Below are positions 6,950-13,906 of a stretch of DNA of 64,000 nucleotides, one piece after another. Within the stretch, counting starts at the first letter, position 1, and every line of letters begins with the position of its first letter. Both the position numbers and the translations under genes were made by a program. The notes beneath the pieces are model-generated. The model did no database searches. It had not been told where the DNA came from and saw only the letters and a list, made by a program, of their open reading frames with translations. The DNA lies in sequence record OM319461.1, one strand, 5' to 3'.

Positions 6950-8080
6950 TTACTTCTTTGGCCCGTTGACTAGGATGTCCATTGCCATTTCAGTAACGCG
7001 AATCATCGTGGTATTCACAGTACCTTGTTTGATAGGTGAACCTACGATACGGTCGTTTACGGAACGATAACCAAAGATAACATCTAGCTCTTTTCCGTCC
7101 ATGGTTTGGTTAACACCATCCAGTGTACCGCCTGGAACAGACTTGAGCTGGTTACCCATCGCATGTTTATCACCGATAGAGTGAGGCAGCAGGCTATCGA
7201 TAAAGATAGAGATTACCATCGTACCTTCGATTACTTTCTCACCACTTACGAAAGTAGCACGAGAGATCTGTCCGGTCTTGGCAATACGTCCACCCATTTC
7301 ACGAGCATGTTTTGCACGTCGTTTGTTATCGGCTTCAATGATTGTGCGTAGACTAGGACTGAAGTCTTCAAGCTTACCATTGTAAACAACTTCGATTCGC
7401 GTAATCTTACCTTGCTTACCAGCAGTCGGGTTAGAGCCAACTAGTTTATCAAGAGCAGCAAGAGAAGCATCTGTATTAGCAATGCCTTCTGTACCGCCTT
7501 CAAGAATACGACAAAGAATCGTATCGTCTTCTACATCAGTACCAACTTCTAACAAACCTTCGACTGATTGATCTGCACGAATCAAAAGACCTTTTTCTTT
7601 TGAAGTCCATGTACTAAGTTTCTTAGTAACACGTGGACCGATGCGAGAACCATCTTCTAGGGTATCATTGTTTTCCATTAGTGCCGTGCGGAACATTGCA
7701 CCAGTCTTCATAACTACGTTACGAGGACTAAAGAAGTCACGCTCAAAGAAGCCAACGTTCCATGCAAGAATGTCACCGGCTACAAATGTATCGCCAGCTT
7801 TCAAATCAGTTTCGAAGTGATGAGGAATAGCTTTACCTTCGGCCTTGCCGTGGATAATGCCAATCTCAAAACCTTTCGTAGAACCGTCTTTGTATTCTAG
7901 TTTCATGTAACGATCATCGATCTTCGCAATCTTGCCTTCCTGTTCCGCCTTAACAACATACAGTGAACCAAGACGCGATGCAACAACTGCATCATAACCA
8001 GTGCGACACGGCATTACGTCGTAGCCAATGGCAGGAGTAAATGCTGACATCTGAACTGACCCTAAATTCTGTCGCTTCGC
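6950..8080 (-). CDS. Virion RNA polymerase beta subunit (phiKZ gp178-like), exon 2
   Basis: Beta motifs ENNDTLEDG and GDKHAMGNQLKSV. Begins AKRQNLGSVQM directly after the intron terminal G at 8081. Confidence 0.9.
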   Translation of the reverse strand, partial: AKRQNLGSVQMSAFTPAIGYDVMPCRTGYDAVVASRLGSLYVVKAEQEGKIAKIDDRYMKLEYKDGSTKGFEIGIIHGKAEGKAIPHHFETDLKAGDTFVAGDILAWNVGFFERDFFSPRNVVMKTGAMFRTALMENNDTLEDGSRIGPRVTKKLSTWTSKEKGLLIRADQSVEGLLEVGTDVEDDTILCRILEGGTEGIANTDASLAALDKLVGSNPTAGKQGKITRIEVVYNGKLEDFSPSLRTIIEADNKRRAKHAREMGGRIAKTGQISRATFVSGEKVIEGTMVISIFIDSLLPHSIGDKHAMGNQLKSVPGGTLDGVNQTMDGKELDVIFGYRSVNDRIVGSPIKQGTVNTTMIRVTEMAMDILVNGPKK

Positions 8081-9519
8081 CAATATCTTCAGGAAGTTCG
8101 TTAAGCTTCCCCTGTTTATACAGCTCTGTCATTACAACAGAAAGTAACAGCGCGACTCACTGTTACGTTGAGACTATATCATACCTGCTTCACTATTACC
8201 GCTAACAGGTTCCTTCCGCTTCCATTTAAGGGATTCAATACCCACCCACTTGGGCCGTACTCTACTCGCTTCTTCATTGTGGTATTTCTCCACAAATCTG
8301 CTTTCGATAGTCGTTGAACTTTCCTCGTATCCGTAGACTTAGAGGCTTAGCTGCGCTAGGGACTTGATGTCCGATTTTCCCAGGTAAAGCATTCTTACGT
8401 TGTCTTCTCTATTTCTAGGAAGGATAGTAGCTTTACTTTTAACAGGAGGTTCCCGCAATTCAAAAGGATTTAAAGACGACCCGTGTTTTTTCTATCACTA
8501 TAAAAGCAATAGGTACAGTTGTCGAAAATTCTTTCACCCTTTGTTTTACATCTGTAGAACAAAGTAGTTTTATTTATTTCCAGGGTCTCATAAGCGTCCT
8601 TGGCCGTGAGAAAGATTGTCTCTTTGCCAATATCCATATTTTTGACTATGACCACTCTCTGTGATGTACAGCGCTCATAATCTTCATATGGATCTTCAAA
8701 AGTTCTCCAGTCTTCATCGCCGAGCTTAAATTGCAGTAGCTTGGTGGTGGTTAGCTGGTGACCTTTCTTTAGCCATTCGCTTATGTAGGTAGGAACAATA
8801 TCGAAAAAACTAGCAGCCTCGTTGATCTTGGAAAATTCAAAAATCTCTCCAGTCAAAACTTTCTTGACGCAGATCTTTTTGGTATTACCAGGAGTCATCG
8901 TTTTAGTATTCTCGGTCCATTTTGGTTTTTCTAAAACCAAAGAATATTGTTTCTGTTCTGGCCAGATAGTCCCTTCGGAAAACTGGACCCGATATTTTAT
9001 TGCCTCGTATGACATATCCAAGCATACTCCAGCTTCTTTGAGACTTGGATAAAAATCCACTTCCCCTGTTGAAGCGTCCCTAACTAAGACTGGCTTACAT
9101 TTGCTGCTTAACTTGTTAAGTCCAGCATGATGACAGTTTTGTTGTGGAGTAGCCCACTCTAGGTTGTCGAGGAAATCATCACCCTTTATTCCATTCTTGT
9201 GGTTAACATATTTTTCTTCTGGGTTGGCAATTGGCTTAAATGTCAAGCACATTAATCGATGTCTGCCGATAGTCATCGTATCGCCTTTGTCATTACGTAG
9301 ACGATAGTGACAATACCCAGCCGGGTTTATCGAACCACTAAGTTCCTTTGTGGTAATCGAACTGTAGACAGTGCCGTCTTCATCGATACCATAATCAGGA
9401 TATCCTGGAATCTGGAAATATTTTAAATTTTCTCTAAGTCTAATCATTTTTCAATGTCCCAAAATTATTACCATGTAATTAGGGGTATAAACTTAGTTTT
9501 TGTACAAGCACCCTTATTG
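8081..9519 (-). mobile_element. Group I intron (IA-like) in vRNAP beta, carrying an HNH endonuclease
   Basis: On the minus strand: P AAUUGCGGGAA (about 8450-8460), Q GCGCAGCUAAG, R GUUCAACGACUA, S GAUAUAGUC (8172-8180). The exon ends in U (GAU) and the intron ends in G. Splicing restores HHDD-AKRQN. Confidence 0.92.
8470..9447 (-). CDS. Intron-encoded HNH homing endonuclease (NUMOD4-HNH-NUMOD1 type)
   Basis: IPGYPDYGIDEDG, HRLMCLTF, VNHKNGIKGDDFLDNLEW and repeated C-terminal F.S..EA motifs. Confidence 0.9.
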   Translation of the reverse strand: MIRLRENLKYFQIPGYPDYGIDEDGTVYSSITTKELSGSINPAGYCHYRLRNDKGDTMTIGRHRLMCLTFKPIANPEEKYVNHKNGIKGDDFLDNLEWATPQQNCHHAGLNKLSSKCKPVLVRDASTGEVDFYPSLKEAGVCLDMSYEAIKYRVQFSEGTIWPEQKQYSLVLEKPKWTENTKTMTPGNTKKICVKKVLTGEIFEFSKINEAASFFDIVPTYISEWLKKGHQLTTTKLLQFKLGDEDWRTFEDPYEDYERCTSQRVVIVKNMDIGKETIFLTAKDAYETLEINKTTLFYRCKTKGERIFDNCTYCFYSDRKNTGRL

Positions 9520-12336
9520 ATCGTCATGGTGCATCGCAGGTAGCAATAGACCAGTGGTTGACAGTACAGAGGTAGCGCCATCACGTTCAAAGTCGAATGA
9601 ACCATGCATGCCACGTTGGTTGCGGATCTTCGTATTAGGCGGAGCAAAGGTACGGATACCTACTTTACCCGAGTCAGGTGTATCTGCCGAGAAACGACCA
9701 ACATCTTCTTTGTGGAAAACACGAGAAGACTTAACCAGAGTTTCTGCCGCACGACCACCTTCACCAGATAGTGAAACCGCTTCTAGTTGTTTAAGAGTAT
9801 GAACAGGGTTTAGTTCTTTAACTAGCTGACAAGTACTGTCAGAAGTAACCGCTGTCCAGACGTCACGAGGGCCAACATAAACCGGATGTAATGAAGGGTT
9901 AGGTTTGTTACGTTGTTCACGTACTGCCTTAACCATTGCCGAATAAACGAATCCAGGGATACGCTCTAGTCGACGCTCGCGCATGAAGTTAGGGTCTGTT
10001 TCATCTGGGAACTCATCGTTGGTAACCAGCTCAGAACAACGAACATACAGATCAAGAATGTCTGTTGGTTCTTTCATCTCTTCCAATACTTCTTTTGTAA
10101 TTGGGTCGACGAAAAGTTCTTCGATTAAATCGATTTCGTTCAGATGGTAGTTACCAAGACCAAGTGACTTGAAGATTGGTGTGTACGAATCACGTTTGTT
10201 TAGGTCACCCGCATTGAAGCCTTTGAGGATATCGTCAGCCACAGTAAAGCCAGCAATGATGAATTCAGCTGTCTTATTAGGGAACGTAAAGTGATAGCGG
10301 TAATCAGCAAACGTAATAGTAAACTCATTGTCTTTTGCCGTAGAGCGAACGTTAGATGGTTCGTTGCGGTATTTTACATTTAGCTTACGCAGAAGCTTTG
10401 TAAAGGACATAGAGTACGCCAGAAGAATACCGATAGGTACACGCTTGCCTTTTAGGTTCTTAAGCTCTGAGAACTCCTGAGGACGTTTGCCCCATCCACC
10501 ACCAATCGCTTCCATGAAGTCACCAACCGGTTCAGACTTCTTAGGTTGATGTCGATGCACGACGTCATTCATGTCAATCGTGAATGCCCAGTCTTTGTTC
10601 TTACCGATTAGGACATGACCATTCTTTTCATATTTCTTGATTGCGCCCTCGCCAAAGAACTCATCGCGATGGACATATTCAAAGTAATACGTAATACCTT
10701 TTGACTTGAATTCAGAAATGGTTTGCATTACAGCGGTATAAGCACGTGGCAATTGAATCTTCTTCGGAATATGGTTCTCACCAAAGCGGATGTTTTGAAC
10801 ACGACTATCGTCTGAAAGCAAACCAGCAGAACGAATGTTCTTTTCAACCCAGGCCGAGTAGTTGTACTTAACTAACTCAGAGCGCTGAATGAATAGCTTA
10901 CCAAAGTAAGAAGTCAACGCCGCACGATGTGGATGTGTCTTACGAATCGGTACGTCCACCTTTTGGCTATCAAGTGCGTATCTCACTCCGTCGGCCTTGA
11001 ATGTACCGTCTTCGTTTACATTGAATAGCTCGATTGGTAAGGTAGTAGACTTACCATTAACCGGCAGTAGCTTAACCTTCAGAGTCATCGCGTCATTCAA
11101 TGCATCGATTTTGTCTTCTTTCTTGATGTCTTGAATCATTACACCAGCAGCAGAGAAATGCTGTAACATATTCAAGATGTCTGCTTCATAGAGACCTGAC
11201 TTAACATAGTCGGCATAAAGAGAGTTAGTCGATGCATTCAACGCATGTGATGGAACCGACAATGGGTTAACAGAGGAAACAAGACGCTCTTTAACCTTTG
11301 TCATTTCCGGAGTAATCTTCGATGCTTCTTCGATGGACTTAGAAGTATCAAAGGGATTAGGCAATTGCTTTGTTCGTTGTTGAACATTGATCATTGCACG
11401 TGCTTGACTAGGAGTCAGTTTACCTGCTTCTGCTAGTGAAGATACTTTGCGAATAAGGCTATTTGGAGTGCCAGGAAGAATCTGTTCCTCGCTTGTGATA
11501 TCCGGGCCACTTGTATCTTCATCTGCCAATGCGTCATTATCACCGCCAGGACGCGTAGCAAGTGTCTTCTCAAACATGTCATAGATCTTAGTGACTTGTG
11601 ACTCACCGCGCTCTATGAGTTGTTGTGCTGATAATACAACACTGTTACGACCTTCGGTAATAACAAACCAAACACGCTTAGGCTCAACCAGCTTTAATAC
11701 TTCGGCCTTGCCTAGCATTAAGTTACGTAGTTCACGTAGCCAAAAGTGACCTGACTCAGTGAAGTCATCCATTAAGTCACGCGGTAGTCCATCTTCAGCC
11801 TTTTTGAAGTTAGCTTCGGTAGGCAGGTTTGAAGGGAACTTGATTGGGATGATGTGGTTACGCAGATAGGTCTGGTCGTTGACTTGTGCAACAATAGCAG
11901 TTGTTAGGTTACGCCATTCGTCATAGAAACGACCAACTGAGTTAGTGTAACGGAACATACGAGTAAGTAGACTATAGTCCACAACGGCCAGTTCTCTTTC
12001 GCGGGCAATTGCGCGATCGACTGTGCCGAAGTATTGCATCCCGCGTTGACTAGCACGATAAGCTTTAATTAGACTGCTGGTATTCGAGTTGATTTTCGAG
12101 TAGTTACCAAACTTACCATAACCTTCGGTACTAAAGGCAATTCGTGCGCTGCCTTCTTCTTTTTGTAGTAGGGGATGACTACCACGAATACCGATATCTG
12201 CTTGAGAGTCACTGATGTGGTGAATCAAAGCACCCAGCGGCAACTCAATTTCCCATGCATCAATAAGTCTCGGTGTAGATAAAGAAGCGCTGAGTCGATG
12301 CTCATACTTCTTTACAAATGATTCTAGTTGTAACAT
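9520..12336 (-). CDS. Virion RNA polymerase beta subunit (phiKZ gp178-like), exon 1
   Basis: Beta motifs SLSGEGGR and DTPDSGKVGI. Ends LPAMHHDD; spliced product is about 1315 aa. Confidence 0.9.
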
Positions 12337-12344
12337 TTTAATTC

Positions 12345-12512
12345 CTATTCGTTACCAGTCATAAATGACAGCACCCATTCGGAAACGTCATCGAATGATT
12401 TAACGGTTAGACCACCATTAGGAGATAGATAGTTTTTCCAGCTTCCCATTAGTTCGTCTACTTCTTGTACAGAGTCACGACTCCACACGTAGTTACATGA
12501 CAACATGTCCCC
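12345..12512 (-). CDS. Virion RNA polymerase beta-prime catalytic subunit (phiKZ gp180-like), exon 2 (55 aa, not in ORF track)
   Basis: Hand translation GDMLSCNYVWSRDSVQEVDELMGSWKNYLSPNGGLTVKSFDDVSEWVLSFMTGNE* completes GADFD-GD. Confidence 0.9.
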   Translation of the reverse strand, partial: GDMLSCNYVWSRDSVQEVDELMGSWKNYLSPNGGLTVKSFDDVSEWVLSFMTGNE

Positions 12513-13906
12513 CAACATGTTAGTTCGACTATATCATCACTCTAACCTTACTCACTTCTTCAGTGCTAATTAGAGGCTCCGCACTTCGCCGCCTGTGATA
12601 GGACTTACGCTACTCTACTCACTGCCCGAAGGCGCTTTCGATAGTCTGTGAACACTGACCGTATCTTGTCATCTCGACAATACTTAGGCCCATAGCTGCT
12701 GATACCCACTCTTTTGGTCACTTAGTGCTATTAACACATATGACAATAGAAATATCTTTTCTGTCTTTAGACGACCGTTGCCGCATATCCTTTCGGATTC
12801 CGTTTTGGTTATTTCTATAGTGTGTGACGTCCCAGCAATTCACGGAGTTTTATTTCGACAGGGATTTTTAGTATGTAACTATAAAATTTTTGTATTTGCC
12901 AGTTTTGGCTATGGCGGTTTTTACATTCGTGGTGGACCTTGATTTCCCACCAGTAAAAACGTAAAAGGCATAGAGACTAGGAAACGTAAACTCATTACCC
13001 TTCTCATCAATTGCCTTGACTACTTTTTTGTTTGACCTATCTTCTTTGGCTACTCTTTCTGGCGTCCAAATTTCCCATTCGGTAATGTCTTTTTTGTACT
13101 TGACTGAAAACGAACCAATTGGAAACTGGTCTTTTTCGCGTAGTCTTTTTCGCAGTACAACAGACGAAACTTTTAACTCTCGCTGAGCAGCGGACACAGA
13201 TTTAAATTCTAAAATTTTTCCTGTGTTAATGTCTCTCGCTAAAACAGAGTCAAAAACTTTTTTCCGTGGTAGTTCTTTTGCCGTTACGTACTTGGTGTCT
13301 TTTAATGTTTCAAAATCTCTGGGATCACAAACATATTTAAAGACATATTTGCCTTCTGGATCAACGTGTCCGTATTTTAACCAAGTTCTAAACTTAGTCG
13401 GTGGCCATTTGAAGAAGAGTGCAGCACGAGTAAGAGATTCAAAAATAAACTCTCGACCGTCTTCAAGTGATTTTATTTGTATGTCGATGGCGTCCTTATT
13501 GAGATCGGTCAAAATCGCATGGATATTGTTTTCTCGTTTGGTGAGCCATTCCAAATTTACACTTCTTGGGTCGGTTTTATCGCCATTGATGTGATTAACA
13601 ACCATTTCCTCGTGATTGGGTGGTGGATTGTTATGTGTCAATGCAATGAGTCTATGCAAACGAACTATGGCATAACCGCGCTTGTCATGTTTTATGCGAA
13701 GCACAGGATAACCAGCGTCATTTACGTAGGTTTTTAGTAAATTTCCAGTAGTCTTATTTTTTATGACGCCATCGGCGTCAATAACATAGCCAGTGTAGTC
13801 TGGTATTTCTTTGGCATTCATTCTATATCTTTTAACTCTTTGTTATAAGTCCATGTGACTAGACTCAACTATAAAGTTGTTAATAGATATGCTCGTCCCA
13901 GGTTAA
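12513..13906 (-). mobile_element. Group I intron inside the catalytic DFDGD motif of vRNAP beta-prime, carrying an HNH endonuclease
   Basis: On the minus strand: P AAUUGCUGGGA (about 12830-12840), Q AUCAGCAGCUAUG, R GUUCACAGACUA (12642-12653), S GAUAUAGUC (12527-12535). 5' exon ends in U; terminal G at 12513. Confidence 0.93.
12868..13821 (-). CDS. Intron-encoded HNH homing endonuclease with NUMOD1-like repeats
   Basis: IPDYTGYVIDADG, LHRLIALT, VNHINGDKTDPRSVNLEWLTKREN and FESLTRAA / FKSVSAAQ repeats. Confidence 0.9.
   Translation of the reverse strand: MNAKEIPDYTGYVIDADGVIKNKTTGNLLKTYVNDAGYPVLRIKHDKRGYAIVRLHRLIALTHNNPPPNHEEMVVNHINGDKTDPRSVNLEWLTKRENNIHAILTDLNKDAIDIQIKSLEDGREFIFESLTRAALFFKWPPTKFRTWLKYGHVDPEGKYVFKYVCDPRDFETLKDTKYVTAKELPRKKVFDSVLARDINTGKILEFKSVSAAQRELKVSSVVLRKRLREKDQFPIGSFSVKYKKDITEWEIWTPERVAKEDRSNKKVVKAIDEKGNEFTFPSLYAFYVFTGGKSRSTTNVKTAIAKTGKYKNFIVTY

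Follow-up and report, generated by a model that had tools for sequence, protein, structure and literature searches.

The gene of the virion RNA polymerase (vRNAP) beta subunit in Vibrio phage C-ZP2022 is interrupted directly behind two conserved aspartates by 1439 nt, which very probably constitute a mobile, self-splicing group I intron with an active HNH endonuclease of the gp210/I-HmuI type. The presence of the intron at this DD site is real and had not been annotated; its exact site and its endonuclease family have already been characterised experimentally in phage PhiPA3 (PMC11620839). The new details are that the endonuclease ORF lies in the P1 loop and its final codons contain the guide sequence, that P2 has been lost, and that two phages which are 98% identical have reciprocal introns. 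The window, i.e. the whole stretch of 64,000 nucleotides that was analysed, is 100% identical to the record of C-ZP2022 (OM319461, 288 kb), a phage mentioned in no paper found in our literature search, and the intron is located on the minus strand. The interrupted gene consists of the following parts:

9520 to 12336, minus strand: exon 1 of the virion RNAP beta gene, 939 codons, ending in ..LPAMHHDD with U9520 as its last base
8081 to 9519, minus strand: group I intron of 1439 nt (5' leader, HNH ORF and ribozyme), absent from phage vB_pir03, recognised by the Rfam match and by orthologous introns
6950 to 8080, minus strand: exon 2 of the virion RNAP beta gene, 376 codons plus stop, first residues AKRQNLGSVQM

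Three independent lines of sequence comparison indicate that the beta gene is interrupted at 9519..8081, namely the protein family profile, the allele of vB_pir03 and the alignment with Thermus RpoB. Each exon was searched on its own, and the junction was examined with the uninterrupted allele that occurs naturally in vB_pir03; the only exon join made comprised about 90 nt on each side, for comparison with vB_pir03. The RNAP beta profile phrog_3148 matched exon 1 with its positions 410-1050 (1.5e-208) and exon 2 with its positions 1051-1420 (5.5e-121), and the join of the exons is thus seamless, since the profile leaves exon 1 at 1050 and resumes in exon 2 at 1051. Phage vB_pir03, which shares 98% identity with the window, has a beta gene that reads through uninterrupted: the blastn alignment breaks at window 8077/9521, the missing piece is exactly 9519..8081, and the vB_pir03 protein contains the exon ends of the window side by side (..LLLPAMHHDDAKRQNLGSVQM..). 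These results, together with the Rfam match described below, bear out the boundaries LPAMHHDD / AKRQNLGSVQM that had been proposed in the initial annotation. The intron is preceded by U (9520), where vB_pir03 has C as the last base of exon 1, and it ends with G (8081). A junction shifted by one base, which would give DD|PKR as in orthologues, was also considered; it would place C at position -1, and it is ruled out by the U required there and by the vB_pir03 sequence, which encodes DD-AKR. Exon 1 lies within an ORF (9514-12336, minus strand) in which CAA TAA directly follows ..LPAMHHDD, in agreement with the earlier prediction that translation of unspliced RNA would end at the second codon of the intron, and exon 2 opens at 8080 with the codons GCG AAG CGA. 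When the uninterrupted vB_pir03 protein was aligned with Thermus RpoB, HHDD|AKRQNLGS stood opposite EHDD|ANRALMGS, which upholds the suggested equivalence to an RpoB motif; the insertion directly behind the two conserved Asp residues corresponds to the D675 region of E. coli RpoB.

Judged from its sequence, the host gene is the orthologue of PhiPA3 gp211/209 and of phiKZ gp178, the virion RNAP beta subunit. Exon 1 has 30% identity to PhiPA3 gp211 in an alignment which stops at DD, and exon 2 has 38% identity to PhiPA3 gp209 in an alignment which opens at KR; the gene order of C-ZP2022 (glycoside hydrolase/gp181, gp180, HNH gp179, gp178) is that of phiKZ. The assignment as vRNAP beta is considered sound because of this orthology of the exons and the matching gene order. 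In the GenBank record the region is divided among three unrelated CDS, labelled 'RNA polymerase beta subunit', 'putative endonuclease' and 'hypothetical protein'; the third is exon 2 begun at an internal ATG. With the intron recognised, this becomes one essential gene that encodes a single beta subunit of 1315 amino acids.

The covariance-model search proposed in the initial annotation was carried out, with a result in two parts. At gathering thresholds the Rfam scan of the whole window gave no match at all, since the RF00028 score falls below the curated cut-off of this family (50 bits). In a search of 9 kb with an E-value threshold, RF00028 matched 8151-8512 on the minus strand over the full model (1-253) with 40.2 bits and E 1.2e-7; the score is depressed because of long insertions in the window intron. 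The conserved core segments are all present: J3/4-P4 (AAUUGCG), J6/7-P7 (GUUCAACGACUA) and J8/7-P7 (GAUAUAGUC). Constrained folding of the window intron yielded P3 (8468-8461 with 8218-8211), P8 and P9-P9.2, and from the presence of P7.1/P7.2 we take the core to belong to subgroup IA. The elements of the intron, in 5' to 3' order, are as follows:

9448 to 9519, minus strand: 5' leader, 72 nt, with the in-frame CAA UAA stop and then untranslated up to the HNH start
8470 to 9447, minus strand: gp210-like HNH ORF of the putative homing endonuclease, 325 amino acids, catalytic His83
8475 to 8481, minus strand: internal guide sequence, the 3' strand of P1 (G-GUCGUC), overlapping the final codons of the HNH ORF
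8461 to 8468, minus strand: 5' strand of P3, UCCUUUUG, pairing with CGGAAGGA at 8211-8218 (Rfam alignment, constrained fold and covariation)
8318 to 8460, minus strand: J3/4 and P4-P5-P6 domain; P5 is extended by a long insertion, and the 3' strand of P4 contains an additional hairpin (GGAC..GUCC)
8308 to 8312, minus strand: 5' strand of P7, GACUA, holding the guanosine-binding pair and following J6/7 GUUCA; invariant in 7/7 introns
8183 to 8210, minus strand: P8 hairpin, longer than that of the orthologues (Rfam alignment, constrained fold)
8172 to 8176, minus strand: 3' strand of P7, UAGUC, within J8/7-P7; invariant in 7/7 introns
8092 to 8166, minus strand: P9-P9.2 region (constrained fold; stems paired in the orthologues)
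8144 to 8166, minus strand: P9 (constrained fold)
8126 to 8140, minus strand: P9.1 (constrained fold)
8112 to 8123, minus strand: extra hairpin in the P9 region (constrained fold)
8092 to 8110, minus strand: P9.2 with the conserved UAACGAA loop (constrained fold)
8081, minus strand: terminal G (omega-G), the final intron base; an invariant column of the alignment of seven sequences

The HNH ORF had been placed 5' of the ribozyme core, with its stop abutting P3. Both statements agree with the coordinates, since the ORF (8470-9447) lies ahead of the core and its TAA (8472-8470) stands 1 nt ahead of P3 (8468-8461), and the position can be refined: the ORF sits inside the P1 loop. This follows from the location of the guide sequence, which falls in the last codons of the ORF (GGU CGU CUU UAA, containing GUCGUC at 8480-8475). 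The exon bases GACGAU (9525-9520) pair with GUCGUC in 6 bp, extended by C9519-G8481, and U9520.G8480 forms the wobble pair at the 5' splice site. GUCGUC at 8480-8475 is the sole 6-nt site in the whole intron which pairs with GACGAU and has G opposite U at -1, and the chance expectation of such a guide site within 25 nt of P3 is 0.015; the 72-nt leader beside the 5' splice site contains no local guide sequence. Because of this arrangement the two strands of P1 have to meet over a distance of about 1040 nt. The intron has no P2, only UUUAAA separating the guide sequence from P3. The exact pairing in P4/P5 is uncertain, as the constrained fold does not give a cleanly canonical solution there, and in none of the seven introns compared did the first bases of exon 2 and those 5' of the guide sequence form a convincing P10.

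Searches with the endonuclease protein recovered seven introns in the same place of the same gene. The insertion site reads NDD|MKR in PhiPA3 and YDD|PKR in Serratia phage 2050HW, whose endonuclease is also carried by Haymo and by Pectobacterium ParM-25, and four IMG/VR contigs (L006, L008, L009 and L010) contain a DD-site intron as well. The orthologous introns all exceed the RF00028 cut-off with scores of 51.9-91.7 bits. With about nine occupied DD sites among 50,697 phage records and IMG/VR, the occurrence of this intron is sporadic. The 3' parts of seven introns were aligned and their covariation was analysed by RNAalifold and scripts. The terminal G and both strands of P7 are invariant in this alignment, and 26 of 50 pairs have compensatory double changes (in P2, P3, P5, P6, P7.2, P8 and P9.1); the window sequence is misaligned at P3'/P8, and both helices were confirmed separately by the Rfam alignment and the constrained fold. 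The sequences of the P9 and P9.2 stems, and also of P9.1, vary among the orthologues while the pairing is kept in each; the loop of P9.2 (UAACGAA) is conserved, as is the 3' tail UGAAGAU..G. In all seven orthologues P2 is directly preceded by GUC, whose partner is the GAU codon for Asp, and the P1-extension pair at +1 differs (U-A, U.G, C-G) and is always paired. Compared with the orthologues the window intron has six rather than three to four exon pairs in P1, and extra hairpins in P4/P5, P7.1, P8 and P9.

The leaders and flanks of the orthologues contain further elements. In L003, L004, L006, L009 and L010, within the 70 nt before the HNH start, the Shine-Dalgarno sequence GGAG is paired in a hairpin with an upstream CUCC, the stems of these hairpins covary, and the same leaders share a UUGAAU motif complementary to UUCAA of J6/7; neither the hairpin nor the motif was found in clear form in the window leader. 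In the IMG/VR contig 3300031933_000228 (L011) a second P3/P4-like start (CUCUAAUUGACUGGAAG) follows right after the group I core, about 450 nt past the HNH ORF, and tandem introns may be present there.

The product of the intron ORF is, by homology, an HNH nicking homing endonuclease of the gp210/I-HmuI type, and its activity and specificity would be expected to be of this type. It passes the Pfam HNH_3 cut-off (25.5 bits vs 24.8) and is matched by phrog_59 (4e-30). Over its full length it is most similar to PhiPA3 gp210 (37.6% identity over 99% of the query, E 6e-58) and to the proteins from Serratia and Pectobacterium phages (38% identity). His83 is aligned with His82 of gp210, the residue whose replacement in the H82R mutant abolishes nicking (PMC11620839), and N95, N104 and H107 are invariant. 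The N-terminal part resembles I-HmuI (PDB 1U3E, E 7.9e-5). The Shine-Dalgarno sequence of the ORF is weak, and NUMOD1, which is present in the HNH ORF of the other intron of the window (see below), was not detected by Pfam in the 325-aa protein. Marginal matches of anthrax protective antigen chains to residues 220-263 (window 8659-8790, minus strand; E 0.007-0.08) were treated as chance.

Comparison with the nearly identical but intron-less vB_pir03 allele revealed clustered substitutions around the insertion site, in the tract given below:

7934 to 9577, minus strand: putative co-conversion tract including the intron, with exon flanks from -58 to +147

The 205 exon nucleotides of this tract contain 23 substitutions relative to vB_pir03, all of them synonymous, against 11 in the approximately 2020 nt beyond it, and the background rate predicts about one substitution in the same 205 nt. 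Of the 13 substitutions in the 1428 nt upstream of the intron, 8 fall no more than 58 nt from the 5' splice site; downstream there are 15 within 147 nt and only 6 in the next ~650 nt. This pattern looks like the co-conversion expected from homing, or like the trace of the reverse event in vB_pir03, and its direction may have been either gain in C-ZP2022 or loss in vB_pir03. Separately from the intron tract, a second dense patch was seen in exon 2 from +888 to +1119 (window 6962-7193, minus strand), where 33 substitutions in about 230 nt cause one amino-acid change; it may be another recombination tract.

The intron-containing allele was also found, with few SNPs, in an independent seawater metagenome (X1) and in two culture runs of a second study (X2 and X3), in contigs that span both junctions or the intron interior, and no intron-less contig or joint was seen among the DNA contigs of these three datasets. 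One listed joint from 8014 to 8123 (side 20, a single low-depth contig) was too weak for interpretation. No RNA-seq run containing this phage was found. In the environmental variants four of the five SNPs in the ORF are synonymous, the 400-nt ribozyme contains none and the leader contains three.

The same polymerase cluster harbours other introns. One lies at window 12345-13906 on the minus strand (RF00028, 40.7 bits at 12501-12895), carries an ORF with HNH and NUMOD1 domains (12868-13821, minus strand), splits ..GADFD|GDML.. in the gp180-like beta-prime-type subunit gene, whose second exon has 55 codons, and is conserved in vB_pir03. The designation of the DD-site intron as the second HNH-bearing group I intron is therefore right for the vRNAP cluster but not for the beta gene of C-ZP2022, in which it is the only intron. 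The beta gene of vB_pir03 has a further group I intron (L002:7619-9167; RF00028, 45.4 bits at L002 7619-8036, minus strand), absent from the window, where the corresponding site is 10955/10956. It was placed after ..SQKVD|VPIRK, again behind a GAU codon and 1.43 kb upstream of the DD site, and contains 5' of its core a 362-aa ORF with matches to DUF723, CapR and treble-clef zinc-finger families. C-ZP2022 and vB_pir03 thus each possess a group I intron with an endonuclease-type ORF that is missing from the other, 1.43 kb apart.

From the homology to PhiPA3 and the intact core we infer that the intron splices, that its endonuclease is active and that it plays a role in competition. In the proposed mechanism the final six exon bases GACGAU would form P1 with GUCGUC, located about 1040 nt further downstream, with U.G at the splice site, external guanosine would cut after U9520, G8081 would dock in P7, and exon ligation would give CAUGACGAU-GCGAAGCGA (the junction reading CATGACGAT-GCGAAGCGA), restoring the single 1315-aa beta subunit. 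Without splicing the protein would terminate in HHDDQ, and AKRQNLGS, a conserved segment, would be missing. Unspliced or excised RNA would serve for translation of the endonuclease, which would nick the intron-less alleles of related phages in co-infection, and repair would copy the intron together with flanking exon sequence. Since the guide sequence is contained in the final ORF codons, P1 formation and ORF translation could be mutually exclusive; we tentatively suggest that this constitutes a switch between splicing and endonuclease expression, and that C-ZP2022 and vB_pir03 form a natural two-way interference/homing system, a combined proposal to which we assign clearly less than even chances.

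Several features do not favour the intron explanation itself: there is no P2, P4/P5 are not cleanly canonical, P10 is not convincing, the RF00028 score is below 50 bits, P1 has to span a loop of about 1040 nt, and the Shine-Dalgarno sequence is weak. It could be imagined that the ribozyme is dead and the gene simply split, the two halves assembling as separate polypeptides beside a free-standing HNH gene. The RNAP subunits of jumbo phages are indeed naturally split, GenBank annotates three separate CDS, and an in-frame ATG occurs 30 nt into exon 2. However, the core is intact and conserved in all its elements, as are U at -1 and the terminal G, the ribozyme is free of SNPs among the environmental variants, the phase is exact, and a product started at the exon 2 ATG would be devoid of AKRQNLGSVQ, which corresponds to the conserved RpoB segment ANRALMGSNMQ; we therefore regard a split gene as very improbable. 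Even less credence can be given to an assembly or annotation artefact of recent origin in one genome record, for which the absence from vB_pir03 is the sole point: it is refuted by the seawater metagenome and the two culture runs, which cover the junctions or the interior.

A more serious competitor accepts the splicing and supposes that the endonuclease is no longer an efficient homer, being either in decay or mainly a weapon which damages the polymerase gene of co-infecting relatives, with little transfer of the intron. The sporadic occurrence described above is in line with this, as is the PhiPA3 case, where the benefit consists in interference and the alleles are only ~60% identical. On the other hand, the ORF is of full length with its catalytic residues conserved and its SNPs mostly synonymous, and the substitutions clustered in the flanks relative to the 98%-identical vB_pir03 are of the kind that homing leaves, so that the supposition appears rather unlikely. 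A mobile, splicing intron with a functional endonuclease remains the explanation which we strongly prefer.

To our knowledge, a competitive advantage for the phage has so far been demonstrated for no intron endonuclease other than gp210. With DD-site orthologues in jumbo phages of Vibrio, Serratia and Pectobacterium as well as in four contigs from metagenomes, the gp210 system now extends beyond the Pseudomonas phages. C-ZP2022 and vB_pir03 represent a natural near-isogenic pair with and without the intron, suited to the measurement of homing, co-conversion and interference, and unlike in PhiPA3 vs phiKZ, recombination between them is not limited by allele divergence.

Among the known systems, the intron of phiKZ gp179 and the other intron of the window resemble the DD-site intron in that a group I core follows an HNH ORF belonging to one superfamily (25-29% identity) within the same vRNAP gene cluster; they differ from it in the gene, which is that of the gp180-like subunit split at ADFD|GD, and in the insertion site. 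I-HmuI and I-BasI are HNH nicking endonucleases encoded by group I introns in the DNA polymerase genes of the Bacillus phages SPO1 and Bastille. They share with our protein the phage intron-encoded HNH nicking type, and its N-terminal domain resembles that of I-HmuI, whereas the host gene and the host phylum are different and our protein is almost double the length (325 against 174 amino acids). An endonuclease gene in the P1 loop, as in the window intron, has been described in fungal mitochondria, e.g. in the group I intron cox3-i2 of Hypomyces (PMC4964425), but those introns are organellar, encode LAGLIDADG enzymes and belong to an unrelated ribozyme lineage.

The closest system is the gp210 intron in the vRNAP beta gene gp211/209 of PhiPA3 (Birkholz et al. 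2024, Science; PMC11620839), where gp210 was proven to be a nicking homing endonuclease, encoded right after the same two Asp residues, which nicks the intron-less PhiPA3 and phiKZ gp178 alleles and provides PhiPA3 with a 3.7-fold relative advantage in co-infection. The benefit measured was interference and not homing, because the PhiPA3 and phiKZ alleles are only ~60% identical, and a role as a weapon against phiKZ was proposed (PMC11620839). The two introns are inserted directly past the second conserved Asp of orthologous genes, encode orthologous HNH endonucleases with the catalytic His kept, and have the same layout of leader, ORF, guide sequence, core, P9.2 hairpin with the UAACGAA loop and UGAAGAU..G 3' end. 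The window intron differs from that of PhiPA3 in its host, a Vibrio phage, and in being known from sequence alone; it has no P2, has six exon pairs in P1 instead of three, possesses the extra hairpins in P4/P5, P7.1, P8 and P9, and scores 40 bits against RF00028 compared with 68 bits for PhiPA3. A further difference is the intron-less partner, which for C-ZP2022 is a phage of 98% identity, in contrast to the divergent alleles of PhiPA3 and phiKZ.
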